Positions 13,054-59,830 of a stretch of DNA of 64,000 nucleotides are shown here, in pieces. This DNA is from Iphione sp. A-MEVVRFRX5 (Eukaryota). The number at the start of each line of letters is the position of its first letter. The stretch's first letter is position 1. The DNA lies in the NCBI GenBank assembly GCA_976226885.1, contig OZ320314.1, forward strand, positions 126,356,001 through 126,420,000, in the 5' to 3' direction. The translations under genes were made by a program, and so were the position numbers. The notes under the pieces were generated by a model. It was not told the origin of the DNA, did no database searches, and was given only the letters and a program-made list of their open reading frames with translations.

Positions 13054-16000
13054 ATGGCTAAGAATCACTATATGGGTTATGGAAAACATTCTGAAGTTCA
13101 GCAGACCGTAATACAGCTGGTTTTTGACTCTGTGAAGGCGGCTTTTGGTAAGTTATCAAAGTTAGATTATGAATTTTGACAAAGAATACATCAGTTCCAT
13201 AGGGAGTAGTAATTTAAGCTTTCATCCATGTTCTACTAAACATATGTATAAAGCATTGGAATTAGTTTTAAAATTGGAAATTCGTCTTTCCTAGTTTTCT
13301 GGATGAAATTAATGCAAATACTATCTTTCCAATAGGAAATGCTACATCAAATACACAAGACAAAGTGACTGTGTGTGATTATGGGGCTGCAGATGGATTG
13401 AACTCTTTACCATTCATTAGATATTTCGAAGGTAGGATTTTAATTCGAATTCTTATTTCTTCATTACAATGTCTCACAAAATAAAATGAAACTTTATATA
13501 GCTATTATACATGAATGGACTCATATACTCCAAAGCTGCGCAGTTTTGTGCCTGCCCTTGCAAGATTATTTCTTTTACGTTACATAGACCATCCTGCCCC
13601 TACGTATCCCCTTTTGTCCCTACTGAGGCCCTCTTGCCCCTCCTGAGTCTCTCCTACCACTATCGAAGTTCTTCCATCACTACTTAGTCTCTTCTACTAC
13701 TACTGCAGCCCTCCTCCCACTACTGCAGCGCTCTTACCACTACTGAGTCCCTCATACCACTACATAGTCTCTCCTAGCACTACTGAGTCCCTCCGACCAC
13801 TACTGAGTGCCTCCTACCACTACTTAGTCTCTGCTACCACTACTGAGTCTCCCCTACCATTGCTGTGTCTCTCCTGCCACTACTGAGTCTCTCCTGCCAC
13901 TACTGAGTCTCTCCTGCCACTACTGAGTCTCTCCTGCCCCTACTGAGTCTCCCCTACCACTACTGAGTCTCCCCTACCACTGCTATGTCTCTCCTACCAC
14001 TACTGAGTCTCTCCTGCCACTACTGAGTCTCTCCTGCCACTACTGAGTCTCTACTGCCACTACTGAGTCTCTCCTGCCACTACTGAGTCTTGCCTGCCAC
14101 TACTGAGTCTCTCCTGCCACTACTGAGTCTCTCCTGCCACTACTGAGTCTCTCCTGCCACTACTGAGTCTCTCCTACCACTACTGAGTCTCTCCTGCCAC
14201 TACTGAGTCTTGCCTGCCACTACTGAGTCTCTCCTATCACTACTGAGTCTCCCCTACCACTGCTGTGTCTCTCATACCACTACTGAGTCTCTCCTGCCAC
14301 TACTGAGTCTCGCCTGCCACTAGTTAGTCTCCCCTGCCACTACTGAGTCTCCCCTACCACTACTTAGTTTCTCCTACCACTACTGAATCTCCCCTACCAC
14401 TACTTAGTCTCTCCTGCCCCTACTGAGTCTCCCCTTACCACTACTTAGTCTCTGCTGCCACTACTGAGTCTCCCCTACCACTGCTGTGTCTCTCCTGCCA
14501 CTAGTGAGTCTCGCCTGCCAGTACTGAAACCCTCTTACCACTACTGAGTCTCTCCTACCACTACTGAGTCTCCCCCACCACTACTGAGACCCTACTATCA
14601 CTACTAGTACCGTCCTCCACTACTGAGTCTCTTCTTCCACTACCGAGGCTTTCCTGCCACTACTGAGAACCTCCTTCGACTTATAGCATGCTATATAGAT
14701 TATCGAGTGATTATACACTGACCCACTGAAAACACACTTTGGACTGTGTGTGACATATAGTTTTTTTTTCCATAATGAATCTCCTCCCACATATCAGCAT
14801 GCTAAGTCAACTGAAACACTTCGAGGCGAGCCTTGACAAGAGGTTTAGTGAGAGAGGCCAGTAAGAGAGGCCAGTATGTAGAGTGTGGGGGAAGTGAATC
14901 ATACATCCAAACATTAACCCGGGGAGTTCCTCAAGGATCAATCTTTGGTCTGCATGTATTTAACATTATGGTTAACAGTATTACAAAAGTGCTCCTGCCT
15001 AGCACTGTCTCAGTGTTATATGCAGACAATCTGATGGTGCTAGTGCATCCCAGGCATCCACTGAGATTCTGGGGTATTGCAATGACAGTCTTAAATGCTC
15101 TCTCTGATTAGTGCATGAGAGAGGGTCTTGGGTTGAGCACTAGCAAATGCACCAACATGATGCTGGGGAGAGGGAAGGGGCATGACTCAAACTACAAGGG
15201 GAGAGCCTGGGAAACATCACTAATTGTAGGTTTCTGGGCTTAAACCGTGATGCAAACCATGAAGGAGAGCTTTCCAGAGGTCAGCAGGAAGATGTGGGTT
15301 ATGTCCAGGAAGCTGGGGGAGAATTAAATGTGTGATCCTAATGGGAAGGAGGCTGACCTTTTACAAATAATTAGTTTTTGCCCACTTACAGTACAACGCG
15401 GTGCTATGGTATGAAATCTCGGCATCAGATGGGGTAAACCAATCACTGCACTAGCATAGCCATACAAAAACAGGCACATTCCTGTCAGCCAGGGTGATCA
15501 ATCAAGAGTTGCGTATTACACTTGCAAGTGAGACTATTGAAAGAAGGGGAAGACAGGCCATTCATCAGCAGATGAAGCTGGGCATTTTTTCCACCATTCG
15601 AGGTCCAAAACCTAAGACCAACAAAGGGAGAACGCTAAGTGGGGAAACATAGAGGCCAAAACACAGGGCCTATGCTTCCTCCCTCAGCTACAAGGTGTGA
15701 CTTGGTGGAGCAGCCTTCCCCTGTAACTGAAAATGGCTGATTAACTACCAAGGAGACGCCTACTGTTTGGATGGTTGTAATTCTGTGCGGCAGTTTACAG
15801 TCTTCAAGTAGGCTTAACTAGGATAGGGCCTGAGGTGTGCTTATACTCGTCTTCAATGATCCATGCAGATAGCCCATACTGCAATGATGTGTCCCTACTC
15901 TATACGTCTAATCTCTGTGATGTGTGTAAAGACCTTTTTTTCTCACTGTGATAACCATCGCCTGTGCTGATAACCACCGCCTGTGCATGGTCTAAGGCCA

Positions 16001-19000
16001 CTTATTATACTGTCAGTTACCTATGTCAAGTCACTTCGTTGACTAATCACTGGGAAATATTACCCACTTCTTAATTGACACATCACCTAGAGTGTGATCA
16101 AACAGGTTCTGCAGAAGGAGTTTTCAATGATTATGACATCATAATAGAGTAGTTCAAGAAAATGAAAGAAAACATGTGGCTGACATCTCACTGATCCAGA
16201 AGTTTGAACATAATTTAGCGGTTTGATCTCAACCCAGAACAAAAGGTCTTTCAAGAACTGAGAAGCTACGTTAAATAAGATTAAGCTATTGGTTAGTTGG
16301 AACTGAAGTCTTGCGACTCAAGTCATCAATGTTCCAACTTGAAACCAAGTTAAGGTCGGGCACATGACAATCTACAGAAATCAATACTGGAATTGGAAGA
16401 ATTCCGATTTGAGATGTTAAAGCTGATGATTCTAAAAGCTGAAGGTGTTAATTGTTACTAAAAATAGTTTATTGGTTTCGTCACATGGCCACCCTTAGGA
16501 CCAAGCTATGTATATGAGGGACTTACTTTTGCAATAAATGAGTTAGTCTTTCACTGCACCTAAGATTGACAATGCTGAACAGATATTTTGAGTGGACATT
16601 CTTTTTTTTCCAAACCATCATTCATCTGTAATTGTGAGACACATTACAATAAGTTTCTCACAAATCTCTTGATGGATTCTCTTCAAATTTAGTACAATCA
16701 TACATGTTTGTGTTGGGTATATTTCTTGTAAATTTGATGAACCTAGCCTGATTCTGGCAGGCAGCAGCACTGAAAATGTAACGTGGACATAGTCAACAGA
16801 AATGTGATGTTTTTCATAATGTAATCTCTATACACAACGTCATTTTCATTAATGTGGTGCCATCTGGTGGTGCCACCTGGTGTTTTATAGAACTCGGCGA
16901 TTGGTCAATTATCCCATATACCCACAGCTGTCTCTACCAATGATGATGAACAAGTATCTCAAAAATTCCAATAGATAGACAGTACTGTGATGATATATAT
17001 TCAGTCATATCACCTCTATGCCATTATTACCATGATGTACTATAAGTGCGAGAATGATGAGTAAACTGTGAAACCTACCCTGAAATGCCTTCAGGTGATA
17101 CTTACATTGATTATATTCTTCCTTTATGATTTGTCTTCTCATCTATGATTTGTATCACTCGTTGTATTTTTTTTTCTCGCTTTTTTTTCCTCTCTCTCCT
17201 TTCTCTCTCTCTCTCGCACTCTCTCTCTCTCTCTCTCTTTTATTCAAGAGGCTCAGAGATGGGCAAGCTGTATAGTCCCATGTAAAATATTTGGTTGCAC
17301 TTATTGAACTTCACATCTTGACGGCTACTGTGTTCAGTGTTGTTTAACAATTTTGCTTTGACACCTTTGGCACAAAACTAAATCTTTGTCTCTTGTTTCA
17401 GAGATGCTTAATGGAAGAGAACTTGTTTGGATTTGTAATGATCTGCCTGGAAACAACTTCCAGCCAATATTCAGGGAATACTATAATCCGTGAGTCAACA
17501 TAAGTGTATCTGTTTATTGATGTATTGATTATAAACATAACATAGCTTTTTGAACCATGCTCCTAAAAACACATAGCATGCAACTTATCAGACACGTTAA
17601 AGTGCGTTTTCTTCTTCGAGTTGCACACAACAATGCAATTTCATAAAGGCAGATGCTGTTCCAATATTTCAACATTGTGTAGTTTGATTGTCAGAATAGG
17701 ACTTATATTAAACGCTTTATTTTATAGGGTCTCCCAAAATGGTAAAAAGAGGAATCAAGTTTACATTTTAGCCTCAGGAAAGTCTTTCTACTCCCAAGTT
17801 GCCCCAACTAATACAGTGAACTTTGGCATCTCCTTGACTGCTGTCCACTGGCTCTCGAAATGGTGGGAAATGCTTTAAGCAATACTGGAGGGAAATACTT
17901 TCCATCATAGATTTTGAATTTGCTTTTACAAATTATAGAATTATAAATCTGTAAATTGTGTGCATTATGTGTTCTCCAATAGGATCAATTACAGTTACTA
18001 TTCATTCTGTGATAAAAAGGTAAATCAAACAATACTGATTTATATTCACAATCGGGTCGGATTACCCTCTCATTGTAAACAGCTATCCTGAATAAAAGTA
18101 TATAAAGAAATTGCTTTAACAAAGCACAAGCATCCATAACATAAGAATGATTGGGTTATATTTTAAAATGATCTTTGGCTAATGCAAACTTCAGTAATAA
18201 AAACTTACATTAGGCAGTTATACACAGCATAGTTTTTCACTGCAAAATATTCAATCTAATCAGCTATGGGAACTGATGTATGGAGGATGTTATGGCAACG
18301 GAAAAAGAAGACTACATCTCTCCCAAATTGTTCTTACTGAATTATCAGAAGATTAAGTCAATGTATGCAGAGATATTATCTGTATGCTATCTTTACATCC
18401 AGTCCAGTGATTGAGCCAGGAATTGACTATCAAACCTATCATCAGCTGGTTAAAGATATAGCAGCAGATGATTGGAAAAACTTCCTGCTGTATCGTGGAT
18501 GTGAAATCAAAGAAGGTATGTGCCTTGGGATTTCAAGTTTAAATTGTGCATGTTGCAGAGCGCCTCATTTAAAGCAATCTGTTATGCATTACATATTCTT
18601 GAAAAAGTATGAAATAAAATTTTAACTTGCAGATTACTGATTTCATTTTTACATAGGTTAAAAAACTATTTAAAGTCTACACTGTAGGAATTAAAGTTAT
18701 AGTAGAGGGATAAATATTTAAAATCTTAGTTTTATCCGCGTAAACTGTCTATTTTCAAAGCCGATGTGGAAGATCGGCTCTCTATGGTCCAGTGACATAG
18801 GAAGTGCATTGAATAGTTTGGCCTCATTACAACAGATATATTTAAAATAAGGCAGTAGTTTTACAATCTAAACACAGGGATACTCATACTATCTCCGATA
18901 GTTAGAAATTTGAGCAATGCCCATGTTGTGTGCAAAGATACTTACTCTTGGTTACATCATCGTATCCTTTAGTGTTCAGTAGGTGATAATCTTAGTGAAT

Positions 19001-20154
19001 TTAGAAACTGTATAAAAGGAAACTAATTTTAATAATGTTTGTCGTTTTTTCAGGTGGAAAATTGCTAGTGTCAATATCAATTCAGACACCCCAAGATGCA
19101 CAACTCAAGTTCATGGGTCTCTATGGTCTTCAAACAGTTATCACTAAAATGTATCAGTCTTTGCTAATAACAAAGGTAATGGTATACAAATTTGTGTTGC
19201 AAACTTATTGTTATGTTTAATCAGTTGCAGTTTGTTGTAATAGTATTGCTATGAAACAACAGTTTTATGATACTTAATGATAACACATTGGTAAATGAAA
19301 ATGACCTTTCTGTCATTATTTTCAAGGGGGAGTATGCAAGGTTATGGTTTCCAAGAGTTATACATCGTTCTGAGGAAGAAATCTATGCCCCTTTTCAGGA
19401 TTCTAGCATTAAGAAAATAGGTCTTGACCTAGTGTCACTAAAAAGATACTGTATTCCTGATTTTCCTGCACGAGAATGGCAGGCTAATGGGGGTCTTCAA
19501 AGTAAGTTTTCTTAATTTCTGTATAAGCCAGCAAAAACTCTCAACTATTTTTACTGCAATTATTTACAGGCATTAATTTGAAGTAACTTCTATTGATTCA
19601 AATTATTTTTTCAAGAATTGCTGGACCAATTTTACGAAAATCATGATATGCCAGATGTTTGAGCTAGGCAGATTTATATTCACTACTATATATATTTAAT
19701 TTTTTCTGATTTTCTTAAAGTACCAGTAGAATATATGTCAAAGATTCCTAGACTGCCTACAATTCCACTAAAATTTTATCCTTGCCCTTGCTTACCTTCC
19801 CAAATATATTTCTAAAATCTGCTGATGGTGGTGCACACTTACAAGACATCTAGTTAACAGATCAAGCATTCGGTACAAATTTGCTATGAAAATTACATTG
19901 TTGACTTTTCCATTTTTTTAGATCCAGCTGCTACAAAGAAATTTGTTGACCGACAAGTATCATTTCTGAAATCTGTTGCATCCATGACATTGCTTAATCT
20001 TGATGAAAGGAGGAGTCCAGCTGAGAGGCAAAAATTCCTTGATACTCTCTTCAAGATGTTGAAGGAAGAGATAATGAGTGACCCGTCCAAGTACTCAACA
20101 AGCTGGTCATTTGTTCTTGCTGAAATTGAGAAACGTGGATCCCAAACGTTTTGA
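13054..20154 (+). CDS. SABATH/Methyltransf_7-like SAM-dependent carboxyl methyltransferase, paralog A (8 coding exons, 351 aa)
   Basis: Exons 13054-13147, 13336-13431, 17402-17489, 17728-17862, 18403-18515, 19054-19175, 19327-19501, 19922-20154. All introns are GT-AG and the exons sum to 1056 nt of open frame. Family motifs occur in order: YGKHSEVQ, VCDYGAADGLNSL, CNDLPGNNF, GKSFYSQV, AVHWLSKCP, DDWKNFLLYRGCEIKEGG, RSEEEIYAPF. Confidence 0.92.
13620..14670. repeat. 20-bp minisatellite (about 50 units, consensus CCACTACTGAGTCTCTCCTG) in intron 2 of paralog A
   Basis: Direct tandem array with degenerate edges. The unit contains TGA on + and TAG on -, so it is non-coding on both strands. Confidence 0.97.
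14833..15730 (+). mobile_element. Degenerate LINE RT 3' fragment, relative of the 9396-12068 element, in intron 2 of paralog A
   Basis: RGQYVECG...GVPQGSIFG...VLYADNL, followed by EGLGLSTSKC-like sequence; stops and frameshifts present. Confidence 0.8.
17188..17238. repeat. (TC)n microsatellite
   Basis: Imperfect ctctctct run upstream of exon 3 of paralog A. Confidence 0.85.
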
Positions 20155-21050
20155 AAAAAATGAAGGCAATCGTTTCTTTAGGAATTTTTCTTTAGGAAGT
20201 TTCATAATAAATCAAAGAACAATTATACACATTTTCACTCGTGCTTCATATTATTGGACAGCTGTAATATGAGAAGTGCGGAGGTATTTGTACATACATG
20301 AAAGTAGCAGTTCAACCCTTGATAACGGATTATCTTTGCCTCTTTTTTGGAAGAATAACATTCCACCAGTTCACCAGTCTCTGCTGAAACAAAACATGTA
20401 ATTTTCCCTAATAAAAACATTGTTATAAGTATGTACAGGCTAGGCCAACACAATAGTCGTCATTGGAATTTTTGGCAAAATGCTCTTCTTTACAATGTTG
20501 CTGGACCACTAAAATCAACAATAATATAATTGCAATTAAATCTCGTTTTAGGAGACCAAGCTTAGGACTGGCTGATTTTGGTCTCTACTTAGAGGTAGTC
20601 TCCCCTGTGAAGCACTAGTCTTTTACGATCCCAAATTATCTCTCAATGATCCCAAATGAGAATAGATGGTAAATAACATAGAATAAAAGAGAGTGCTGAT
20701 ATAAACATTTAATTTTTGGATTTATTGGATACTCATCAAAGAAGCAAGAGGACACACCTCCTCCAGGGTGTCAAGTATGGGGATGCCCTGCAACTCTTCT
20801 GGAGAGCCTCACAGGGCTTGGGCACATCTAAGTCATTGTGGGTTCATCATCGGTTGCTAAACCACATTTTTAGCTTACATAATGATCATACCACCAACAT
20901 GTGATTCATATCCCCACCCTCATGACACATCATTATCGGCTCACAAACATCAGGTTATCAATGGTTGACACATCATGCTATGTACCAAAATAGAGTCTTG
21001 TCACGTCATGCTTACTGAATGACTACTCCCTTTCTCTTGTTATCAATACC

Positions 21051-21203
21051 CCTTCAGAGTCACTTTGTCCTGCTGCCTATTTGTCCTGGTCAATTTGTCC
21101 CAGCCCATGGGTCTATTTGTCCTTCCTTTTTGGGGGGACAATTCGACCATGGGACAAATTGATCATTGGATAAATAGGTAGCGGGACAAAATGACTCTGA
21201 AGG
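21051..21203. mobile_element. Short foldback/MITE-like element (about 150 bp)
   Basis: Left arm ccttcagagtcactttgtcctgctgcctatttgtcc is an imperfect inverted match to right arm ggataaataggtagcgggacaaaatgactctgaagg; internal tttgtcc subrepeats. Confidence 0.8.
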
Positions 21204-22619
21204 AAGACAGGTAATGATATTCAATTCAAGGTCGGATCAGGCTTCATTCACATCATTGCAGTTGTAAATAACAGATCTGAACCTATCGTTAACCTCCCCT
21301 CATCCTGGTAAAAACCATTGGGTCTGTCCTGCTGATAACTGTTCCCTAATTAACAAAGCCTTGGCTACGAAGAAATTAGTCCTTAATTACCCAAAAATTC
21401 CTACTTTAATATTATTGGCTACCTTAAACTATATACTTATACTCCTTACAGTAAAACCTCATATTCCAAGACCCTACACTTTACACATGGCTTCTCCATC
21501 TCAGGTGTTGGAACCTTCAAAGAGGTACTGATTGTGCCTCCTCTAGAGTGTCACAAGCTTGGTTGGTCTTCTCTGTGAAGCAATATGAGCAGTCTGGGAC
21601 TCCATATCTTGTTCTCTCGCTTGAAATGGTTTTCCTGCAAGCTGGTCTCCGATGAGAGGCTTTTACATATAGGTTATGTACTGAACTTTGCTTCGTTCTG
21701 ACTAATTTTGTTCTCTCCCCCAGTTTGGTCTCCTTTGTGAAATGAGCTTTCATCGTTGCGCCACTGTATGTATTTCAACAGAGTAAAATATGATAATATT
21801 CAGTAGTTTTTACCAAACCGGTAGTAGGTTAATGCATACACCATCGTGCCAATTTCTGCATAGAAAAATCGTTCAATTATATTTATGAATACACACGATT
21901 TATACAGGTATTACTCCCCCTACTCTAAGAGACAGTGGGAGGCGACAGGGACCGAGCCAGCTGGCCCACCAGTACATACACTGCTGCCACCTGTGAGCTA
22001 CCTAGGCTGAGGCTGCCTAGGAACCAGTACACAACAAACATTCAAGTGAGTTGGAAGTTGAGTGAGCCACCGGCACAGGGAAGCTTTCTCTCCAGCAGCA
22101 AATGAAGAATCTTTCAATCGATTGCAATCGATTTCCGATCAAAGTGGCATGAATTGCCACTATTGCTTGAAATGACCGATACCAACAAGTGTGAAATGTC
22201 CTAAAAAAAATCAGTTCTGAAGGATTGCAACCAGGATCCCCACAAAGAGACAAAACCAATTCGAGTTCAGAATTAATGGAACAGAAAGCAGTGGATTATC
22301 TAAATCAATTCCAAGTTGCAGTAGAGCAGCAGCAACTTTGGTTGCTACTTTACAAAATACTCAACTAGAAGCCCAGCTGGCAGCACTCAAACTTCAATAT
22401 GAGGAGATCTGCAGGGGTAACTAGGAATGAGTACCAGGCACCAAACAGACATCCATACGGAGTCAACGGGCCTAGATGGGCAGTCAGGCAGCAGCCACCA
22501 CACAGACGATAGTGAGGGCGACCAGCACACAACCATGACCATGTTTGGCAACTACCACCAACAGATACAGAGCTATGACTGTGGCTATCCACCGACAACA
22601 CTATATTCATATCGCAACT

Positions 22620-23520
22620 AGACCATGTTACTGCAAATTTGAATCATAAATGAGATATTGTAATCACAGGTGACATTAATATAGACTTGCAAGGCAAAGA
22701 CAAGAATAAAACAAATTATAATCCTTCTAGAGAACTATGGAATAGCCGACCATATCACTGTTCCTACTAGAAAGAGCCAAAAATCATGTACTATGATTGA
22801 TATGATTGGGTCAAACATCGAACAGATAGTTCAAACTGGAGCTGTTGACTGTGGGCTGTCTGACCATCATGCAACTTTCATAATTAAAAAGCACTTAAAA
22901 AGAGAACCCATAGTGCTCCAAGAGAAATCACTATAAGAACAGAGCCAGGTGTTGATGAAGCAGACATTAGGGAATGCATGAATTCTCTAAATTGATATGA
23001 TCTCTATCATTCAGATAATGTTGACAACTGTTGGAACATCTATTACTCAAATTTGGTATATATATCTGACAAATACTTTCCTGAAAAGACTATTCACATT
23101 ACTGTGAGAAGCCCCCCATGGATGAATAATGCCTTGTTAAAAATGATCAGACTTAAGAACTATTATCGTACTAAACATAGAGATAGGAATGATGAAGATA
23201 CTTCAAATATATTCAAATATTTGAAGCAATCGGTAAATATACTATCAGAACAGCCTAGGCCTTTCACTACAGAAACTGCCTGAAAATCACTAGGAAACAG
23301 CCAAGATTATTCTGGAGTACAATTAACAGCTTACTAGGTAGAAACACCGATATGAGGTCACAGATAAGCATTGAACATAATAATGTATCATTTAAGGGCA
23401 ATGCAGTATCAGATCTATTCAACACACACTTTGTGGAAATTGCAACGAAAAAACTTCAAGAAGCAAACATAGACACGGGTAAGAATGACCTGTCTTCTAA
23501 AATGTCTGATAATGTACCTA
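22620..23520 (+). mobile_element. Degenerate LINE ORF2 N-terminal part (APE endonuclease and linker)
   Basis: DIVITGDINIDL, HITVPTR...TMIDMI, GLSDHH and SPPWMNNALLKMIRLKN. Sequence upstream (about 21950-22620) may be an ORF1 remnant. Confidence 0.8.
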
Positions 23521-23587
23521 TGTTACGATAGGTGAATGTACTATTGCTGACCTGATAACTGATAACTTTGTCCACCACAATTCTCAC

Positions 23588-24549
23588 AAGTGGTTCTTGT
23601 ACCAGTTTCTGTGTGATAAGGCACAATCAATGCAAATCCTAGTCAGCCTTAGATATGATGAGGGAGTGAATGAAATATACAATGAAAGTATTAATAGAAT
23701 AAACTGGAGGAGATTGTGATTACACATAAGACAGCCTAGCCTCATCAACGTAAAATCACACTGAGTTGTAGGCACTTTTTTTTAAATATTAGGTAAATGT
23801 TTCTGTATAACATGTTTTAGTACTCCATAACTTGAATCCTTTTCTATAAGTTAGGATTCATTAAGTAAGCATTTGGGTCACCACCATGTATACAGTCAGC
23901 CATCTGCAGGACTATTACCTATTGATCAAGTACCTAGAATTGATTAACCTATTTGGGATGTTGTTGAAATGTGACTCTACCCAGATCTATACATGTGGCC
24001 AAAGTGCAGTGTTATCTGCATTTGTTTCATGGTTTGCTAACCTGATGTCTGCTCACATTTGGACTACATTATGAGAACAAGACAGTGCTAGGTGAGCTTG
24101 TCTGCCTTTACGTTGAGACTTGGCAAAAGCACTTAGGTGGAGGATATGTTGGAAAGAGGAATTTTTACTTGAGGGAAAGATTATATGAAAAATAAGAATG
24201 TGCTGTCTCAATGTGCTACTAGGGTCCCAAGAATTCTGGAATTCTTATGGTTTTGTCACATTAGAAGTTGGCTCTCTCTATATGTATATATATATATATA
24301 TCTTTGAATGAATTTGGTACTTTAGAATTAACAAGTTTTATGACCTCTGTGATGTGGGCTTTAACTAGTTTTACCTTGTATGCAGCGTACTTGGGATATG
24401 TACAAATCCCCAATCTTGCACCACTTATCTAAATCCGTGCTTAACTGTATAGATTTCAAACGATTAACAGGTAATCTCCCCATTTCTATACATTTCCCCA
24501 TTTAACCTTAAAATTTACAAATTTAGGCAGGCCTGACTTAACAGATGTT
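23588..24549 (+). promoter_or_regulatory. Conserved upstream non-coding block of paralog B (homologous to 38541-39385)
   Basis: Collinear matches to the paralog C upstream region, e.g. aagtggttct...ctgtgtgataag.cacaat.aatgcaaa, tgcag..tact.gggatat.taca and ttccccattt.acc.taaaa.ttacaa. Donor-like AG/GTAAAT at 23793. Confidence 0.65.
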
Positions 24550-31246: not shown

Positions 31247-33956
31247 AGATGCTTAATGGGAGAGAACTTGTTTGGATTTGTAATGATCTGCCTCAGAACA
31301 ATTTCCAACCAGTATTCAGTGAATGTTATAACCGGTGAGCTAAGATGATGATTTCAATGCAGAGATTGCAAAACCAAAGCTTTAGAGTTCACTTCTAAAA
31401 ATACTCCATGCAAATATTAGCAATGCAAAAGTTTCTTGTCTACTGTGAGTTTTGCACTGTCTCAAGAAAATAACACAGGTCCTGTTTCAATCAATTTGAT
31501 ATTGTCTCCTGTTATTGCAATATTTCTTTCAAGATTATCTCAGTTTAGCAGTTCATACTTGACTTACATTATTCTATTTTTCAATAGAATCTTCGAAAAT
31601 GCTAAAGATGAGAATCAACTTTACATACTAGCTTCAGGAAAGTCGTTCTATTCACAAGTTGCACCAACCAATGAAGTGAACTTTGGAATCAGCTTAACAG
31701 CTATACAGTGGCTCTCAAAATGGTATGGACACTGACTAAAACGCAATCTATTGAATAAGGGGAAAGATAAGAACAGTTTCCATTTATTGACACCAATCTG
31801 GGAATTCTTTAATTTTAAATTTCATTTTATTTCAGAAAGCAAAGCTAGCATAGGTCACTATTAATAAAGCAGATATTGAAGCTGATATGATGCATTTTTC
31901 TCCTAATGATATATAAAAGGGTTCCAAATTCACTCCACACTCTATGCAACTAGTCAATGTGTACACATATATTTGCCTTAGTTAGTTATCTTTTCCATCC
32001 AGTCCAGCCATTAAGCCAAAAATTGACTATCAAATCCATCATCAGCTGGTTAAAGATATTGGAGCAGATGATTGGAAAAATTTTCTGCTCTATCGTGGAT
32101 GTGAAGTTATAGAAGGTATGAAGCTCAGGATTTTGACTCAAATCATAGGTGACAGTGCTTTAAAACAGATCACACATGTAAAGTAATTTTTCAAATGCTT
32201 TTTAAACACAATAGACTTTAATTGGCTATAGATGAGAGGTAAATCAGTTTAGTATACTATTAAAAGCATACAGCTATGTGTATAAGGCTGAGAGAATAAG
32301 TATCTCATTCAGATTGATTTGTATTTGTAAAGTTTATGTAATTGAATTAGAAAGGAATCAGTAAACCCATAGATCCATATGAATCAATGACTTAGAAGTT
32401 GCAAATCAAATTTAGGTCTTGTGAGAACAGATGTATAAAGGAAGTTTCAAATTACCATCCACTAAATATTCTTGGAGGGATGCGACAAGCATTCTTTTGG
32501 CAAACATGGGTGAAACTTTCGGCTAATTATGCTATTGCATCTGGTCAAAGTTAATTCATTATATTGATAGTGAAATATATTTGCCATCAATCTCTCATTT
32601 TCAGGTGAAAGATTGGTTGTGTCAGTGGTCACTGAGTTATGGCATGATATTTGTGCAAAGTCACATACAAAGTCCATTTGGCTTCATGGCTTTCAATCAG
32701 TTATCACCAATATGCATCGGTCTTCATTCATAACAAAGGTAAAATTATAAAGAATTTGTAATGCTATTGTTTGGTGAAACTTTCATTCAAAACTATTTAT
32801 TCAATGCTGAGTATCTCAATTTACGTATTATGTCTTTACAAAAAGATAAATTTACTTGAGACTTTATAGCAAACTAGTAACTGAAGGGATACCAAAACTT
32901 CCTTAACCTATTTAAAATTTTACTCCTGCTTTACTTTCATGCATTCATCATTTTCAGGAGGAGTATGCAAGAATGTGGTTTCTAGATATTATTTTGCGTT
33001 CAGAGGAAGACATCTGTGCCCCTTTTCAGGATCCTATCATTCAAGAAATAGGTTTAAAAATAGTTTCTCTAAAAAAATTCCATGTTCCTGATTTTCAAAT
33101 GAGAGAGTGGCAGACTAAAGGGGGTCATAAAAGTAAGTGTTCCCAAAATAGTTCCTAAAAATCAGACGAGGGTTTCAAAACAGCTCGATCTTTATAACCA
33201 CAGTTCTCCACAAAACTTTTTTAAATAATTTTTAAGCATTCTTTAGATACATTTGAAATATATCAGAATCATAATAGTTTGCTGTATGGCATGTATAAGA
33301 ACAGAAAAAAAAACTTTTGTATACCATAAATATATTACAAAAAAGACTTCACCTCATAAATTCGGAAAATATTTTGCAAATGAATGGTTTCACTGTTTCT
33401 GCAGGCTTGTAGCACTTGTTAGCCTGATAACAACATTGATGTTCTTTTATTTTATTAGTTCAGTAAAGGTGTCTAATATTTTGATTATGAAAGGCTCTTC
33501 CATCACCTTTGTGTAACTTCCATCTATATTACTAGATAGGCAATTGATCTAGAAACAGTATATTCATTGTAGTTCACTGTTCTTTGTCAAAACAATCACA
33601 GAACAAAGTATTCCTTTAAGTAATCAGGGCAATTGGGCAATCAGATTATACACATCAGGTCCAAACATAACATTTAATATAAATAGGCTACAACTATAAA
33701 TCTACTTCTCTTGCTTCATTCAGATGCTGCTGCAATAAAGAACTTTGTGGACAGACGAGTATTATCTCTCAAATCTGTGTCACCTATGATATTGCCAAAG
33801 CTTGATGATACAAGAAGTACAGAGGAAAAGCATAAAATTCTTGACATACTCTTTAAATTGTTACAGGAAGAGATAACAATTGACCCATACAAATATTCAA
33901 CCAGTTCATCACTTATTTTGGTAGAGATTGAAAAATGTGGAACACAGGCATTTTGA
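31247..33956 (+). CDS. SABATH-like methyltransferase paralog B, partial: exons 3-8 open, exons 1-2 not found (possible pseudogene)
   Basis: Exons 31247-31334, 31588-31722, 32003-32115, 32605-32738, 32958-33132, 33724-33956. Sizes and phases equal paralog C, introns are GT-AG, and there are no stops or frameshifts. Motifs NDLPQNNF, GKSFYSQV, AIQWLSKCP, DDWKNFL, RSEEDICAPF. Confidence 0.85.
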
Positions 33957-34239
33957 AAAAGAAACTACAACAAATAGAATTCCTTAATATTTCAAGTGAT
34001 ATTAGCCAATAGTTATTCAGATTTTCCCTGATTCTTCATTTTATTCCATAAATGTTTTGGTTCTACATAGAATTTGAATGCTGTATCAAATATAAATCCA
34101 AGATATTTGTTTTCTTAACTGCTTAATTTTCCTAACACAATAACAATCAGAGCTTGTTGGTAAAAGTTTGGCATGATTTAAAAAAGACAAATTACATGAC
34201 TGAGAGCAGATTGTTTGAGTGAATCACTAATGCACATTA

Positions 34240-37200
34240 TGACACTAAAGTATTAGCAGTTTTACTAGTTTTGGGGCTTGCAATAGCCTCAAAAGCTGCC
34301 GAGCTGAAGGTGGGCGAAAATAGGGAGCGTCCAAACAACAATAAACAAAGCAGACAGTACAGCCGAGATGATCTGCTGGCCTGGTGTGATATTACACACC
34401 CTAGGGCACTTATTGATCTGTCAGAATAGATGATACAGCCCCCCCAGCCAGCCAGAAAATGAGGCAGGAAGGGTCTGTGCCAGATTGAAAAGATATGGAT
34501 TAAGGGTCCCTCTACCAAGTATCATCATGGGAAATGTGAGATCAATAAGAAACAAAATAGATGAACTTGCTGCCTTGTGCAAACATGACTATGCCTTCCA
34601 AAACTCCTTAATGATATGTTTAACAGAGACATGGCTACAACAAGGTGACCCTGATGAACCTTTCCATATTGATGGTTTTAACATGATCAGGGCTGACAGA
34701 CAAGGAGAGGCATGTAAGAACACGAGAGGTGGACTCTGTATCTACATCAGTGAGCGATGGTCTAAAAATGTGTCTAATCATGATTGGTTTTCTGATAAAA
34801 ACATTGAACTATTAATAGTAAATGTGAAACCATTCTACCTGCCCAAAGGATTCAACAAAATATATGTTTTTAACATCTATATACCACGAAATTGAGATGA
34901 CAAAAAAACTTCTGTCTTCTGTAATTCTGAAATTCTGTATAGGAAACTATCTTATGTTGAAAATATGTCACCAGATGCAGTTAAGATTATTACTAGTCAT
35001 TTTAATGAGTGTAAATGTCAATCCTTCATACCACACTACCAGCAATGTGTTACATGTACAACCAGAGAGGACAAGATGCTTGATCTATCATATTGTAACA
35101 TCAAGAACAGTTATGTGTCAAAGAAAAAGATGCCTTTAGGTATGTCAGACCGTAGTATGATCCACTCTTGATCCCAACTTACAAACAAAAATTTAACCAA
35201 AGCAAACCTGTACATAAAACGGTCCAAGTTTTTCACAATGAAACAAATGAGAAATTGCTGGGATGCTTTGAACTCACTGACTGGTCCACATTGTATGATG
35301 CTTCTCAAAGTTTGGATGTGAACATCAGTGTCATATTTTCCTATATTAACTTCTGTGTGGATAACTGTGTAAAAACAAAACAAATTATTTGCTATCCGAA
35401 TAATAAACCGTGGGTGTCTAAGGACCTTAAGGTGCTGCTAAATCAGAAAAAATAATGCATTGCATGTAAAGACAAGCTCATACTCAAAGGTATACAAAGA
35501 GATATAAACAAGATGATATATATATGTAAGCAAGCTCACAAGAACAAAGTGGAAGACCTCTTCAGAAAAAATTGATTCTAAAGCAGCATGGAAAGGCTGA
35601 AAGACCCTGACTGGTTTGGTGAAAAAATCGGTTTCAGCAGATCCATCAGATTTACTTGCATATTGTAATGAGCTTAATAAGTTTTATGCTTGGTTTGACA
35701 ACTTTGATTTCATTACAGAAGGTGCTGTAATGACAAACCAGCTTAAGGCCAAAAGTGATCCTAAAATTGTAATCACAGAAAAGGATGTTATCAGAAGTAT
35801 CAATGGTGTGAAAGGTAACAAAGCATGTGGGCCAGATGAGATAAGTGGTAAAATTCTCAAACTGTGTGAGACTCAACTGGCACCCATACTCACTCGAATA
35901 TTTCAGCACTCAATTGACAAATGTGAAGTACTTATTGACTGGAAGACAGAGATTGTACCTCTGGCCAAGAATAATGATCCCAAATGCAATAATGATTATT
36001 GTCCAGTTGCTCTGACAGACATTATAATGAAATGCCTGGAGAAAACATTAAAAACTGAATTGTGTAAACAAGTGAAAGATTATATGTAGACCCATTGCAA
36101 TTTGCATATACAGCCAAAAGATGTGTAGAAGATCCCACACTATCAATCATACTTAGTGTCTTGAAATTTCTTGATCCACCAAACTGCAAAAATGCTAGCA
36201 GGTTTGCAAAAATTCTATTTATAAACTTCAGCAGTGCATTTAATACCAGTCAACCACACATCTTGATGGAAAAACTTATTTTAATAAATGTAAATGCTAA
36301 CTGCATCCTAGGGATAAAAGACTTTCTCATAAATAGAAAGCGATATGTAAAATATAAAGCCGTCTCCTTAGATGTAATAACAACAAACACAGGTGCCTCC
36401 CAGGGTTGCGTCTTGTCACCTATCCTGTTTACACTGTACACCAGAGACTGCAGATCATCCTACCCCAACAGTTATGTATAGAAATATGCAGATGACACAG
36501 CACTGCTTAGCCTATGTACTAATAATGATTACAAGTATCAAGGTGAAATAAAACATTTTGTAGAATGGTGTAGAGGTAACTTTCTAGAATTGAATGTAAA
36601 GAAGACAAAAGAAATGGAGATTCTTTATACACATAACATTCTCAAAACTGATAACCAAACTGTATATGTTGTTCACAAATACAAGTATCTAGGCACTATT
36701 ACAGATGACAGATTAAATTTTAGTCCAAATGTGGATAGCATGTACATGAATGTAAATTCAAGGATGTTCTTCCTGAGGAAACAATACAAATTGAATGTGG
36801 ATAAGAAAATAATGGAACTCTTCTACACCTCTCTGATTCAATCACTTCTAACATTTTCAATAACATGCTGGTTTGGGAACTGTACAAGACAATCAAAGGA
36901 CAAACTAAATAAAATATCTTATGGCAGCAAAAGGCTGGACCTCTGTCACAGCAAATCATTGTCAGAACTGTAAAAAAGAAGTGTTGTTCAAAGAACAAAT
37001 GTGGTAATTTCAGACAAGACACACCAACTATCACATATGTATGAGATTTTACAATCTGGTAGGAGATTCAAAGCTGAATATGCTTGTACAACTTGAAATT
37101 TTAATTTTTTTGTGCCAAGTACTATGCAAAATTAAACAGTAGTAATACATTGAAGATATAAGACATCATTCCATCACCTTTTCCCACTGTGCTACGTTTA

Positions 37201-37312
37201 CATGTGTGCATGTAGTACGTCAGTGATAAATCAATCCTGTATCCTATTATACTGTGTACAAGCCAAGATTCATGTTTACATGATTAATAAAGTTTATTCT
37301 ATTCTATTCTAT
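34240..37312 (+). mobile_element. Near full-length, decayed Rex1/Babar-like LINE between paralogs B and C
   Basis: LRVPLPSIIMGNVRSIRNKIDEL, CLTETWL, GGLCIY, NNKPWVS, NFSSAFNT, GASQGCVLSPILFTLYT and YADDTA (about 36485), broken by stops and frameshifts. AATAAA plus (TTCTA)n tail at about 37286-37312. The 5' boundary is approximate. Confidence 0.88.
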
Positions 37313-38540
37313 ACTAGCTTTGTTGTCTGTTTTATTGCATATACATTTGACTCTTTCCAATAGTGTGAATTGATCACACATTAATCTGAGATAACATGGG
37401 ATATGATAAATACCAGATTCAGCAGGATGTGACTTGGCTACAATATTTCAACCAATTGATCCAAAATACATATTCAATATTTCATCAATTAAACGATTGT
37501 CACTAATGTTTTTTTTTTCATGCAGCAGTGTTGCTTCATCCCTTCTCTTTATTAAACAAATACTTGTTTTCAGAGTATTCCTTGATTTGGCTGAGTTACC
37601 AGAGGCTGATGCCATATCAGTCATTCTGAAGCCTTTTTGTCTGATCCTTTTGAAATATCCTAGGTAGCAGCCTGTCTTCATGTTTACCTGATTTGTGTTT
37701 TTTTCCCTGACTAGGTCGAGAAATCCACCTGTAACCAAATTCGCTTTATACTTCCTCAAAATGCATGTTTTAATTGACTGATTTTACGTCATCATGAAAG
37801 CTTCAAAGCATATGAGCTTATATGCAATAACGTACTAGTATTATAAAAGCGTAACTGACATGAAATGAAGAGCTTAGCAATAGATATCAAAAGACTAAAA
37901 ACTGCCATGCATCCCCCAGCAGGTCTACTTAGCAATAACATTTAATAGATTGCTGATGCCCAGTGTATTTCTCCTGGATATGGCCTATAAACAATGTATA
38001 GTTTCAGGGGTTTCCTCTTAGCCAGTTTCACCTAGACCTTTACAGTATCAGTGACATAATAAACTCTAGTTCTACTGGCAATGAACTGACTGAGAAATCC
38101 TCAGTGACTATATCGATGAGTGCACCAACCCTTTTTGCATACACATTTTATATATTTCCTTCGTAGCTGATATCCTGGGATATCTAGGAAATTATCTTGC
38201 ATTCATATCATTGATATCATTAGTTGGACAGAATACCTGGGTATTGTTAGCCAAGTCTTACAATAGGTTGTCAAATTACTTATATAGGCTCTGTTTTTTT
38301 TGTAGAAAGCCACGTGCTTTCCTTATAATCCATCTAAACTGATAATGAGATAAAAGTGTGAACTCACTAAACTCAATGTCTCAGACCATTATGACTAATT
38401 TCCATAAATAACATAGATATAAATAAGCACAGATAAAATTATAGTAGGAAGGGAAGAGTATATCAGTGTAACATATCATTATCAGTTGTGACCAAAATTG
38501 CAGTTATCAGTAGGATGTGCATAGCAGAACACATCTGTTG

Positions 38541-39385
38541 AAGTGGTTCTCATATCAAGTTCTGTGTGATAAGACACAATGAATGCAAACACTAAACCTT
38601 AGTCACCTTCAGATATCAAAGGGGATGCTTGGAGATATATTAAGAGATTAGGAATAGAATAAACTGAATGAGGTTTTGACTACACACAGGACATACTGAC
38701 CTCACCATTGTTAAATCCCCCTGGGTTGTAGACACTGCAATAACTTTAGGTAAGTATTTATGTATGTTTGTTTTAGTACTACATAGATTCATCTACTCTC
38801 GGAAACCTATAAGGTATAGCCAATGTACCTAGAATTTATGGTCTTATCTAGGATATGGCAATATTTGTGACATGAAGTGACCATGTATAGATCCGTTAAC
38901 ATGTGCACAGAGTGGTATCTCCTTTTATTCCATAGATTGGCTATCTGACTCTGGCTCTTATTTAGGCAATGCTATGAAAATAGACAGAGTTTTTGTGAGT
39001 TGGCATGACTCTGTTTTGTTTTTCCAATGATAAAAACCTTTCAAATAACTTAGGAAACCACTTAGGAACAGCATATAATTGAACAAAGACTTGAAATCTT
39101 TGAATATATTTTGAATTGTTAGCTTTCCAAGTTTAAAGTCCTTTGTGACCTAGACTTAAGCTAGAGCTTCAATATATGCAGTATACTAGGGATATCTATA
39201 CAGACAATCCCTCCTATCTTGGTCTCAAATATACAAATTCTCAATTCAATTGTGTAGATTTCAAAGGAATCAATATTTCTTTTTTCTTCGGGTTTTGTAT
39301 GCTTATCCTAATTCCCCATTTGACCATAAAAATTTACAAGAGACACACCGTGTCTATCTAGACAGGTCTGACTGTACTGATGTTG
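38541..39385 (+). promoter_or_regulatory. Upstream block of paralog C: probable promoter and/or non-coding first exon
   Basis: Conserved with 23588-24549. Donor-like AG/GTAAGT at 38750, and an acceptor CAG at 39892-39894 four nt before the ATG. Confidence 0.55.
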
Positions 39386-39898
39386 TACAGATATTTTGAT
39401 AATTATTTTGTAAGAAACTTTTGTAATGTGCTTTCTTTTAAACGAAAAAAACAAAATATTGCACTAATACGGGAAAGAAATATTTCTATGATATATCTCA
39501 GACATGGTCTGATTTGATCTAGAATATATCTGGAGCTTATCAGTGGCAGACTACAATAAAGGTCAAAAAGCAGTACTTAACAAAATAGATAGTATACTTT
39601 GATTTGAGGTAAGGTACTACTATATCATTGACTGGTATTGCAATTGACTGCAATTTGCTGTTCCCTTGTTAACCTATTTCCAATGTTGTTTAAACTCCAT
39701 CATAGGTGTACACATTGCCTAATACTGAAATGAAGAAGGGATGGATAAAATTTATACAAAGATCTTTATACTAGGGATATCAATAACTGAAGTTCATATA
39801 ACAGCTCTTTTATATTGGAAGCTTTTGATTGAAAGGTCATATTAGAATGACATTTCCATCGATTAACATGTTTTCCTGATTATTGATACATCAGCATC

Positions 39899-42800
39899 AT
39901 GTCTACAAATAACTATGCTGATTATGGAAAGCTTGCTGAAGTCCAAAAGACAGCTGTACAGCTTGTGTTTGACAAAGTAAAGGAGGTTTTTGGTAAGTTA
40001 TAGTAACTGCAATATGTAAAAAATGCATAGTTGCTATAGACAATAGCAGTTCTGATTTGGTTTTTGCTGTACACACACACATATATATATACATATGTAT
40101 ATATATAGAGAGCAGTAATAATCAATGCAACTTTTGAAATGTATTTGTATTAATTAATAACTATAAATCATATTCTTTCTCATAGGAAATGTTTTGTCCA
40201 AAACACAAGACAAAGTGACTGTGTGTGAATATGGAGGAGCAGATGGATTGAATTCTTTACCATTCATTAAATATTTCCAAGGTAACATTATGACTATGAT
40301 TTAATATATATATATATATATCATTGTCTATTGAGTTAAGCATTACTTGGTAGTCACGTCAGATACCAGGTTTTAAGAGATGAGCATGTTTTATGTCTTT
40401 AATGTCATTAAGATGGAGGGTAAGGCTGATGAAATTCTTGTACAGGTTTACCTCCTTTCCCAGATTAAGAACTTCAAGGTTCCTAGATATTAAGAATTTA
40501 AACAGTGCTATTGTATTCTACTCGTAATGACAGCAGAGCAACATTTTTGGCTGACCAGGAACCAGCGTGCTCTTATTGACATACTTTGTAGTTATGTATG
40601 AAAAGAATGCTAAATTCAAGGAGGAAGGTTTTGGTCCTAAAAAATGAAATGGTTTTATTTTCATCATTTTTTCTTTACCACCAGGACTCTTAGGTATAGG
40701 TGGGATGAAACAATTTAGATTCATTTATGACCACTTTGTTACTGATTGAAAAGTGATGGTTAATTGTATACCTATGGTTAATGCATGTGTTAACAAGGCC
40801 AGAAGGTTTACCTTTAGCTCTTTGCAAGAGGGGTGTCCCCTTAAGTAACCCTGGCAGAGAACCAAAATAAACCTAATACAGTGGAACCTCTCTACTACAG
40901 ACAGCAAAGGGACTGACTAAAAAGTGTCCATAAAGAGGAGTGTCCTTTATAGAGGGGTATTTAATTATGCTTATATAGATTTGGTTCTGCTTAAACAGCA
41001 GTCTAATTCAATAGGTATGCCTTTTGCAGGGCCTTTGTCTGGATTGGCCTCTACAGTGCTTGCTGAGAAACATATGTGAGAACTCTGCAGCTTTACCAGC
41101 TGAATATTCTCCAAAACACACTGTGGCATCTTTTGTGGTCATATAATGAATATTTTTCTGCTGTGACATAATAAACATGTTTTCAACCTATAATCTGTTT
41201 TTTTTTTCAGAGATACTTAATGATAGAGAACTTGTCTGGATTTGTAATGATCTACCAGGGAACAACTTCCAACCTTTATTCCTTGATTGCTATAACCAGT
41301 ACGCTAACATTAAGCATTCTATACAGTGCTTGTAAAGCATATAAGAGCTTTCTAAGGTAACTTTTTAAAGCATGAAAATATTAGCAATGTCGAATTGGAC
41401 TCTGTAGTATGAGTATGCCCTTTGTCCTTGATAAAATGTATAACTGAGCTCATATTCCAAACAAATCGAATTTGTCTCATGCTATTTCAATATTCTATTC
41501 AGTATTGTTTCAGTTAAGAGGTTCGTATTTGAGTTATGTTACACTGTTTTTTCAATAGGATCTTGGAAAACACTAAAGATGACAATCAGCTGTACATATT
41601 AGCTTCAGGGAAGTCTTTCTACTCACAAGTTGCCCCGACCAATTCAGTGAACTTTGGAGTTTGCTTATCAGCTGTCCACTGGCTCTCAAAATGGTATGAG
41701 AAAAGAGTAAAACATAGTCATTTCAAAAAGGGGGATACATATCTATCAAAGGTTGAATCACATCTGATTTACATAATTCTAGAAACTACTGAAGCTTCAT
41801 TTTAATTCATTCTCAGCAATACAAATATAACATAAGTTACCATTAATTCACTTGTTATATAAACTGATATATGATGTGTGTAACTGCTAATTATAGAAGA
41901 AAAAGGCTACATCACTTCCAAATTGATTCCATGCTCTCCAAATGTAGCAACTGTATACAGGTATACAGATATACTTGCCTGTTATCTTTCCCATCCAGTC
42001 CAGTGAGCAAGCCAGGAATTGACTATCAAACTCATCATCAGCTGGTTAAGGATATAGGAGCAGATGATTGGAAAAACTTTCTGCTGCATCGTGGCCATGA
42101 GATTAATGAAGGTAGGTAACTCAGATAGGATTTGGCCTCTTTTAAAAAGTACGTAAAGCTAGAGATTACTGATTACAAGTAATTTGTTCTCTGGTACATA
42201 TTGTTTAAGCAACATTGAATAGAATTTCAGTCATATCTGAGAAGAAAAGAAATAGGAATATAAATTATTAGTGAATGTAAATCAATAAATATCACTCAAA
42301 GTACTGAGTAATAGTTGAAATCTGTATCGCATTTTTAGGTGGACGATTGGTTGTGTCAGTGGCCAGTGAACCATGCCAAAACATTGGTTCAAATCAACAT
42401 ACAGAGTTCCTTGGTCTCTATGGCCTTCAATCGGCAATCACTCATATGCATCAGTCTTTGCAGATAACAAAGGTCAATTTGTAAAGAAACAGAGTGACAA
42501 CATGTTGTGTAAAATTGTATTATTTGTGATACTGCTCTCTTCAGGAACAGCTTCATTTTAAGCATGGCATATTCTATTTATGCATTGTGCCTTGAATTAA
42601 AGATGTATTTACCTGAAACTTACATACAAATTCATAAGCAAGTAAAATCTTTCTCCACCCAGTTAATATTTTACCCTTATTTCACTTTTCTGCACTCATT
42701 ATTTCCAGGAAGAGTATGCAAGAATGTGGTTCCCAAGTGTTGTATTTCGTTCAGAAGAAGACATCTGTGCCCCCTTTCAGGATCCTATCATTCAGGAAAT

Positions 42801-44004
42801 AGGTGTAAAGCTAGTGTCACTAAGGAAATACAGTGTTCCTGATATCCAAATGAGAGAGTGGCAGGCTAAAGGGGGCCATAAAAGTAAGAGTTCTAAGTGG
42901 CCTCTGAAAATTCTCATTATTATATGAAATTCATTGGAAATGCATCAACATCATAATTTATTAGATGTATTTATTTTCATTAGGGTCGGACAAATTTTGC
43001 ATATACTACAAAATGTAGTGCCATAGAAAGGGACTGATAGCAGTTAGTTCTGAAATCCCTTCACAAATGATATAAACCCTATAATGATATAATGATATAA
43101 TCCCTTCACAAATGGTATAAACATCAATGATTTTGGTAGATTTTATAATGTTTACTTTGAAGAGTTTGATTTATTACTTTAATCTAAAATACTGACCATA
43201 TAATTATGCAGTCAACTACCTATTGCCTGTTCCTATATTCTTTTGGTATATGCTAACTAAAGAGTGCCATTTGGACATATTTGTTATAAAATGACAATTG
43301 CTGCTGTCAGAAGAACATCCCCATAAAGTTGGATATGTATATTTGATGCATGTGCTATTTGACTGCCACATTTACCATCAGGGGCTAGAATTCAGGTCCT
43401 AATTATTCTTATATATGAGGAAACTATCAGGTATCGGTTTGACGTCCCTAGAATTGCACAAGAATCATATACCATTGCCTACAATTTCACTTAAGACAAA
43501 TTTCTATCAATGTTGTAAAAATGTATTGGTTAAGGAAAGATTTATATTCCACTAATAGGTTTTCTGTGTAGAAGAGCAGACTTACATATTTAGATAAAAT
43601 TGTACCTGTATTCTTATAAATTTACACTGATATGTATAAATACAATCCCACTGTAAAGTTTCCCCTCAGGTGATGTTCTCATGCATTTCGAAGACACAAA
43701 TAGTGTCCAGATAAAAAAAATAAGTACAAATAGGCTGCAACCATTACTCTTATTACTCTTGCTTCTTTTAGATGCTGCTGCTACAAAGAATTTTGTGGAC
43801 AAACAAGTATCATCTCTCAAATCTGTGACATCTATGATATTGCCTAAGCTTGATGAAAGGAGAAGTTTAGAAGAAAAGCATAAAATTCTTGACATACTCT
43901 TCAAACTAGTACAGGAAGAGATAACAAGTGACCCATACAAGTATTCATCCAGCTGGTCATTTTTTCTGGTGGAAATTGAGAAACATGGATCACAGACATT
44001 CTAA
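39899..44004 (+). CDS. SABATH/Methyltransf_7-like SAM-dependent carboxyl methyltransferase, paralog C (8 coding exons, 355 aa)
   Basis: Exons 39899-39992, 40186-40281, 41211-41298, 41559-41693, 41999-42111, 42339-42472, 42709-42883, 43772-44004. All introns are GT-AG and the exons sum to 1068 nt of open frame. Motifs YGKLAEVQ, VCEYGGADGLNSL, NDLPGNNF, GKSFYSQV, AVHWLSKCP, DDWKNFL, RSEEDICAPF. Confidence 0.92.
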
Positions 44005-59693: not shown

Positions 59694-59830
59694 ATGTTAG
59701 GTGGAGGGTTTCCAATGTTTGGCCTACCTCAAGAAGTTGTGTCTGACAACAGACCACAACTCGAGTCTGAGGAATTCGAGAGTTTCCTCAAGAAGAATAG
59801 AGTGAAGCAATCTATGACCCCATACAATCC
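59694..59830 (+). mobile_element. Gypsy integrase fragment, 5' part
   Basis: FGLPQEVVSDNRPQLESEEFESFLKKNRVKQSMTPYNP matches FGLP..IVSDNGPQF.S.EF..F...NG+KH...PYHP. Confidence 0.8.

Follow-up and report, generated by a model that had tools for sequence, protein, structure and literature searches.

A tandem cluster of SABATH-like methyltransferase genes with a conserved spiralian intron plan in the genome of Iphione sp.

SABATH-type methyltransferases typically make volatile or hormone-like methyl esters, and members of the family are therefore well-defined candidates for the unexplained signal, defence and osmolyte chemistry of invertebrates. The papers that we found describe these methyltransferases as plant enzymes, and one preprint labels the family (Pfam PF03492, Methyltransf_7) plant-specific. 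What, then, are three such genes doing in tandem in a stretch of 64,000 nucleotides from Iphione sp. A-MEVVRFRX5 (assembly GCA_976226885.1, contig OZ320314.1, positions 126,356,001 to 126,420,000 of the forward strand; hereafter the window, in whose numbering positions are given), how did they come to be there, and do they still encode enzymes? By rebuilding their exons, comparing their introns with those of homologs in other phyla, and mapping their residues onto solved structures, we arrive at an account that we consider probable on sequence comparison: genes A and C encode functional S-adenosylmethionine (SAM)-dependent methyltransferases of an old spiralian family with eight exons, and copy B, which lies between them, is a beheaded copy.

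Gene structure, family membership and selection

Searches within the window (tblastn with pieces of open reading frames, and tblastx between the three regions) locate three head-to-tail paralogs on the plus strand, for which explicit modelling of GT-AG splice sites on collinear coding blocks gives the following loci:

13054-20154, plus strand: gene A, complete, 8 exons, 351 amino acids
31247-33956, plus strand: copy B, 6 exons corresponding to exons 3-8, 291 codons
39899-44004, plus strand: gene C, complete, 8 exons, 355 amino acids

Splice sites are canonical GT-AG in 38 of 38 cases across A, B and C. For the exons that each copy has, the exon start phases (0/1/1/2/2/1/0/1) are common to all copies, and lengths are equal for exons 1-5, 7 and 8 (94, 96, 88, 135, 113, 175 and 233 nt), while exon 6 measures 122 nt in A and 134 nt in B and C. 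Exon 6 encodes the GG(K/R)L(L/V)V motif of the family and starts at 19054 (A), 32605 (B) and 42339 (C); a start at the edge of the similarity was rejected, as it breaks the frame, and the real acceptor lies 56-68 nt upstream. In-frame stops precede the ATG in both A and C, and AATAAA or ATTAAA follows every stop codon. The exons of the two complete genes, all on the plus strand, are:

13054..13147, plus strand: A exon 1; ATG; Y-G-K-H-S-E-V-Q, with Gln16 the equivalent of Gln25 in Clarkia SAMT
13336..13431, plus strand: A exon 2; motif I, CDYGAADGLNS
17402..17489, plus strand: A exon 3; NDLPGNNF, the equivalent of SAMT Asp98/Leu99
17728..17862, plus strand: A exon 4; GKSFY...HWLSK; Pfam Methyltransf_7, 33.8 bits
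18403..18515, plus strand: A exon 5; DDWKNFLLYRG
19054..19175, plus strand: A exon 6; GGKLLV, then a variable helix
19327..19501, plus strand: A exon 7; 175 nt, the length found in Lingula
19922..20154, plus strand: A exon 8; stop, with AATAAA at 20206
39899..39992, plus strand: C exon 1; ATG; contains AEVQ
40186..40281, plus strand: C exon 2; motif I, CEYGGADGLNS
41211..41298, plus strand: C exon 3; splice model
41559..41693, plus strand: C exon 4; Pfam Methyltransf_7, 32.1-39.7 bits
41999..42111, plus strand: C exon 5; splice model
42339..42472, plus strand: C exon 6; GGRLVV
42709..42883, plus strand: C exon 7; splice model
43772..44004, plus strand: C exon 8; stop

A first-pass annotation made from the letters of the window had placed here three paralogs with the same intron phases and ordered motifs, and the window searches and splice models agree with it: its limits are exactly the ATG of A and the stop of C, and the models contain the motifs it quoted, with EVQ encoded by exon 1 (A and C), D/E-YG-A/G-ADG by exon 2, and WLS by exon 4 (all three copies). 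The seven introns that it gave to each gene are found in A and C; B, from which exons 1-2 are absent, has five. Protein identity is 68% between A and C, 74% between B and C, and 64% between A and B, and B and C are the younger pair, because they align through their introns as well. Intron 2 of gene A contains a minisatellite (13620-14667), with 52 copies of a 20-bp unit at 82% matches.

We assign A and C with high confidence to the Methyltransf_7 (SABATH-type) family and fold, as the first-pass annotation had done, on the scores of exon 4 in Pfam and on an end-to-end match to a model of PF03492 homologs. In a Pfam scan on single exons, for which the curated cut-off of PF03492 is 29.8 bits, exon 4 alone scores above it in A (33.8) and C (32.1-39.7) and just under it in B (28.7); its matches in the PDB include loganic acid O-methyltransferase and the fatty-acid O-methyltransferase of Mycobacterium marinum. 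Against a local hidden Markov model (HMM; length 377) built from 31 homologs, most of them with a precomputed PF03492 label, the spliced proteins of A, C and B score 217, 216 and 165 bits and cover positions 19-376. Alignment along the full profile also favours the predicted fold, a Rossmann-like core with a helical cap at the C-terminus. A profile of the homolog group in turn matches solved structures, with E values of 8e-71 for 5f2k, 3e-41 for 1m6e and 9e-39 for 6c8r, and also matches the N-methyltransferase structures 6lyh, 6lyi, 2efj and 2eg5.

The plant framing of the first-pass annotation stands as far as the family goes. The plant SABATHs (Clarkia SAMT, 1m6e; loganic acid O-methyltransferase, 6c8r; the caffeine-pathway N-methyltransferases 2efj, 2eg5 and 6lyh) belong to the same fold family, with group-profile E values of 1e-31 to 1e-41, but the group profile places the bacterial fatty-acid enzyme above them (242 bits, compared with 145 bits for Clarkia SAMT). 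The contacts to SAM and the pair of residues that clamps the substrate are conserved between the window genes and the plant enzymes, whereas motif I differs (D/E-YG-A/G-ADG in place of DLGCSSG) and the window genes fall outside the plant clade. No plant sequence occurs among the nameable matches of the 105 best exon-4 matches.

In Clarkia SAMT, Gln25 and Trp151 are said to hold the carboxylate of the substrate, and Asp57, Asp98/Leu99 and Ser129/Phe130 reportedly contact SAM. Chained alignments (group profile to PDB, and window protein to local HMM) place these residues as follows:

SAMT Gln25: Gln16 in A, Gln16 in C
SAMT Asp57 (motif I): Asp46 in A, Glu46 in C (a conservative change)
SAMT Asp98/Leu99: Asp77/Leu78 in A, Asp77/Leu78 in C
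SAMT Ser129/Phe130: Ser112/Phe113 in A, Ser112/Phe113 in C
SAMT Trp151: Trp134 in A, Trp134 in C

The Gln/Trp clamp claimed by the first-pass annotation is thus kept in both complete genes. Its module of three genes shrinks to two copies able to encode a SAM-binding enzyme, as B keeps the clamp Trp but has neither exon 1 nor the exon of motif I.

By the Nei-Gojobori method, the ratio of nonsynonymous to synonymous substitution rates (dN/dS) is 0.30 for A-C, 0.33 for A-B and 0.29 for B-C (pairwise range about 0.28-0.33), and synonymous divergence (dS) between copies is 0.49-0.63. These values indicate that A, B and C are old duplicates under purifying selection, without obvious diversification, and the "diversifying" module of the first-pass annotation is not upheld. 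The very long stem branch of their clade would fit a history in which all three copies are decaying pseudogenes, a reading that we judge extremely unlikely: A and C have kept their full reading frames open, with a start codon in each, 14 canonical introns between them and the catalytic motifs, and these coding features have been maintained despite a dS of 0.6, with dN/dS at 0.30.

Introns shared with molluscs and a brachiopod

A profile of exon 4 from the three paralogs, searched with HMMER against 1.84 billion representative sequences, gave 105 matches, to which the spliced proteins align nearly end to end by BLASTP (25-31% identity, E 1e-27 to 1e-33); no relative above about 31% identity to the window clade was found in the databases searched. 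The named relatives comprise many predicted proteins of gastropods (Haliotis, Batillaria, Littorina, Babylonia, Pomacea and Patella) together with the brachiopod Lingula, the rotifer Rotaria, scattered protists, one fungus and bacteria. A search with a mixed alignment of homologs and window exons found only gastropod relatives of its first sequence and one fungus, and nothing nearer the window genes; two short exon-like matches (P0011 and P0089) were rejected as relatives, being metagenomic contigs of microbial eukaryotes. The first-pass annotation had called such enzymes essentially uncharacterised in animals, and our literature search, within the one collection of papers that it covered, indeed found no functional study of an animal member, the PF03492/Methyltransf_7 papers dealing only with plants or a protist (Plasmodiophora); the presence of the family in animals is itself no novelty, as mollusc, brachiopod and rotifer annotations already list dozens of predicted PF03492 proteins under automatic, plant-derived names ('gibberellic acid methyltransferase-like', 'farnesoic acid carboxyl-O-methyltransferase-like').

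Among spiralian relatives, Patella vulgata XP_055958079.1, Pomacea canaliculata 'At5g38780-like' and Lingula anatina XP_013380226.2 and XP_023930208.1 ('gibberellic acid methyltransferase-like'), all named by automatic transfer from plants, share with the window genes the Pfam family, the 8-exon plan, a DYG-type motif I and the motifs NDLP.NDF, HWLS and DW..FL..R..E..GG, and Lingula shares the tandem clustering as well. Protein identity to these genes is, however, only 25-31%, and the window clade is long-branched, with a shorter N-terminus.

Intron positions were compared on a joint protein alignment. For the homologs in Lingula, Patella, Pomacea, Rotaria and Haliotis, exon structures were rebuilt on the genomic loci so as to yield each annotated protein exactly. 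Eight exons, with intron phases 1,1,1,2,1,0,1, are found in Patella and in Pomacea, a series that the two Lingula genes jointly give as well; the phases of the window genes are 1,1,2,2,1,0,1. Six of the seven introns agree with those of Patella, Pomacea and Lingula in column (within one column) and in phase, and intron 3 is off by one column and one phase, or about 4 nt; Lingula and the window genes both have an exon 7 of exactly 175 nt. The sole intron of Rotaria coincides with intron 5, and the Haliotis rubra gene examined is intronless. Such agreement is beyond chance, and the window genes and the mollusc and brachiopod genes therefore share an intron-bearing ancestor, which excludes contamination as well as recent transfer. 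The family is an ancient one of spiralians, and its intron plan is conserved across phyla.

The first-pass annotation had taken the seven introns as an argument against contamination and the genes as residents of an animal genome, and the shared introns sustain both points. Patchiness of the family across life (bacteria, protists, one fungus, rotifers) and a sequence tree in which animal and non-animal sequences interleave are what could still recommend foreign DNA, whether it came in as contamination or was recently acquired by horizontal transfer from a plant, protist or bacterium. We regard the chance of this as practically negligible: the genes have seven spliceosomal introns at, or within about 4 nt of, mollusc and brachiopod positions, they are embedded among long interspersed nuclear elements (LINEs) of animal type, and a dS of 0.5-0.6 between copies points to long residence.

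The wider point is an ancient, intron-conserved SABATH-like family common to spiralians. It has a very long history in them and has undergone repeated expansion, which took the form of tandem arrays at this locus and in Lingula, and of intronless copies in abalone. Taken alone, this locus adds a further, unusually divergent member to an enzyme family already known, the animal branch of which is annotated and unstudied. The Haliotis expansion belongs to the same family and includes H. rubra XP_046557222.1 ('probable 7-methylxanthine methyltransferase 5'), which ranks among the top BLAST matches of gene C (at about 28% identity, E 1e-33). Its gene has no introns (1218 nt for 405 amino acids; fetched locus 10001-11218), whereas the window genes keep the ancestral ones, and the large Haliotis expansion may stem from a retrocopy. 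The 22-kb Lingula locus holds at least four family members. In the 438-amino-acid L. anatina XP_023930208.1 (fetched locus 14473-22591) the exon-4 motif occurs twice, the second half repeating the first, and the exons fall on one gene copy and on the beginning of its neighbour; two tandem Lingula genes have probably been fused in this annotation.

Copy B, the headless paralog

Copy B and the remnants upstream of it consist of:

23588..24463, plus strand: upstream remnant blocks, collinear with the region upstream of C (38541-39268)
31247..31334, plus strand: exon 3; its second in-frame codon is ATG
31588..31722, plus strand: exon 4; HWLS changed to QWLS; Pfam 28.7 bits
32003..32115, plus strand: exon 5; splice model
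32605..32738, plus strand: exon 6; GG changed to GE
32958..33132, plus strand: exon 7; splice model
33724..33956, plus strand: exon 8; stop

Sensitive blastn and tblastn searches of the whole 64-kb window with exons 1-2 of A and C matched only those exons themselves. Exons 1-2 of B are gone from the window; B is therefore without a start codon and without the SAM-loop exon, and alone it is incapable of being a normal enzyme. Two blocks 5' of B (23588-23829 and 24300-24463) are collinear with blocks 5' of C (38541-38785 and 39096-39268); this homology ends at 24463 and resumes only at exon 3, and the region between holds reverse-transcriptase fragments. B would have arisen in the B/C duplication, and its start and SAM-loop exons would have been lost to the rearranged, transposon-filled region.

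With A as outgroup, private residue changes number 31 in B and 19 in C, and changes at codon positions 1+2 and at position 3 stand at 42:33 on B compared with 26:33 on C; on B they include substitutions at positions conserved in the family (HWLS to QWLS, GG to GE, and WSF to SSL). Neutral decay was simulated on the coding sequence of C and scored as the share of runs in which the frame is still open, which came to 3% with all 75 B-specific changes neutral, 15% at 40 neutral changes and 37% at 20. The simplest reading is that B was functional over much of its history and was beheaded fairly recently, and we lean towards regarding it as a recently decapitated, young pseudogene.

B might instead still be in use, with a new first exon, as an alternative 3' cassette (for instance by splicing to exons 1-2 of gene A, the phases being compatible), or as a non-catalytic partner made from the ATG at the second codon of exon 3. 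Its six exons are open over 291 codons with 10 of 10 splice sites intact, its pairwise dN/dS is in the range of about 0.28-0.33 given above, and complete neutrality since the B/C split is improbable at 3% of simulated runs. We nevertheless find continued use rather doubtful: the nonsynonymous rate is raised on the B branch, conserved positions are substituted, the simulated open frames are quite compatible with recent decapitation, and the terminal exon of A with its AATAAA stands between exon 2 of A and B.

Tree position, predicted chemistry and surroundings

In protein trees a stem of 1.85 changes per site leads to the A/B/C clade, the placement of which varies with taxon sampling: one tree sets it beside the mollusc/brachiopod group with weak support (81), and another sets it outside. 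Non-animal sequences interleave with animal ones even when the window genes are left out. The conflict between trees and introns is real, and, set against the intron evidence, we take it as model noise and as long-branch error, which a stem of this length makes likely. A haptophyte protein from Pavlovales sp. CCMP2436 (fetched locus 2001-3428) resembles the animal type: it shares the PYG..GSG.YSD N-terminus with Lingula and Pomacea, and in trees it lies near Lingula sequences; the single intron of its gene coincides with no spiralian intron, and transfer between lineages or a tree artefact are both possible explanations of the likeness.

Several points weigh against the account of A and C as working enzymes of the spiralian family, with B as a beheaded copy. 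The sequence tree shows no spiralian clade, and approximately unbiased (AU) tests marginally reject both a grouping of the window genes with Lingula (p = 0.037) and one with Lingula and the molluscs (p = 0.022). The link from window protein to solved structure is indirect, running from the protein to the family profile and from there to the PDB, and function may have shifted over a divergence as great as that of the stem. The intact frame of B and its 10 intact splice sites leave room for residual function, and N-methyltransferases occur among the SABATH enzymes that have the same pair of clamp residues.

Of the solved enzymes, the one that scores best with the group profile, in an end-to-end match, is the M. 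marinum fatty acid O-methyltransferase (5f2k/5f2n/5f2o), a carboxyl O-methyltransferase acting on hydrophobic acids that shares a DYG-type motif I and the (Q/H)WLS motif with the window proteins; it is bacterial and intronless, and the direct match of window exon 4 to it is modest (22 bits). A and C would be cytosolic, SAM-dependent small-molecule methyltransferases, in which SAM is expected to be held by the D/E-Y-G-x-x-D-G loop, the acidic residue of N-D-L-P and the S-F pair, and the carboxylate of the substrate to be clamped between Gln16 and Trp134, giving the methyl ester of a probably hydrophobic carboxylic acid. We are slightly inclined to this prediction of carboxyl O-methyltransferases with methyl-ester chemistry on a hydrophobic acid. 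Tandem duplication would have given A and C, with strong divergence from all sampled relatives afterwards; as the two differ chiefly in the exon-6 helix, their substrate preferences may differ.

Marine invertebrates accumulate N-methylated acids, and the fold and family of A and C contain the N-methyltransferases that the group profile matches (6lyh, 6lyi, 2efj and 2eg5). A and C could accordingly be N-methyltransferases themselves, making for example a betaine-type osmolyte or an alkaloid from a pyridine- or purine-like acid. This we think unlikely: the two residues holding the carboxylate in Clarkia SAMT are both retained, a fatty-acid O-methyltransferase ranks first among the solved relatives of the group profile, and a literature search found no paper tying homarine to the SABATH family.

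A bolder extension of the O-methyltransferase prediction is that the spiralian 8-exon family, A and C included, represents the animals' own carboxyl methyltransferases for lipophilic signalling acids, with methyl farnesoate as a product that it could make; this compound is reported to be the annelid brain hormone, in work cited in PMC9181382. As a whole we hold this proposal to be very unlikely. If true, it would give the family a role independent of arthropod JHAMT and parallel to that of the SABATH farnesoic-acid methyltransferase of plants, and the tandem paralogs would serve to adjust the chemistry of hormone or pheromone esters in this lineage.

Elsewhere the window is rich in transposons, with reverse-transcriptase fragments between the methyltransferase genes; an Rfam scan of the window gave no matches. 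Its other features are:

9396-12068, minus strand: uninterrupted LINE open reading frame of 890 amino acids, with endonuclease and reverse-transcriptase domains
44269-44391 and 44672-44794, just 3' of gene C: 123-bp inverted repeat, 97.6% identical, with arms about 280 bp apart
59694-62131, plus strand: integrase-like and reverse-transcriptase-like fragments of open reading frames

The closest database relatives of the LINE reading frame are only about 26% identical to it, and it looks like a member of an unsampled element family that is possibly still active. The inverted repeat resembles the ends of a small DNA transposon or an element like a miniature inverted-repeat transposable element (MITE), and the fragments at 59694-62131 suggest a degraded element of long terminal repeat (LTR) or DIRS type.

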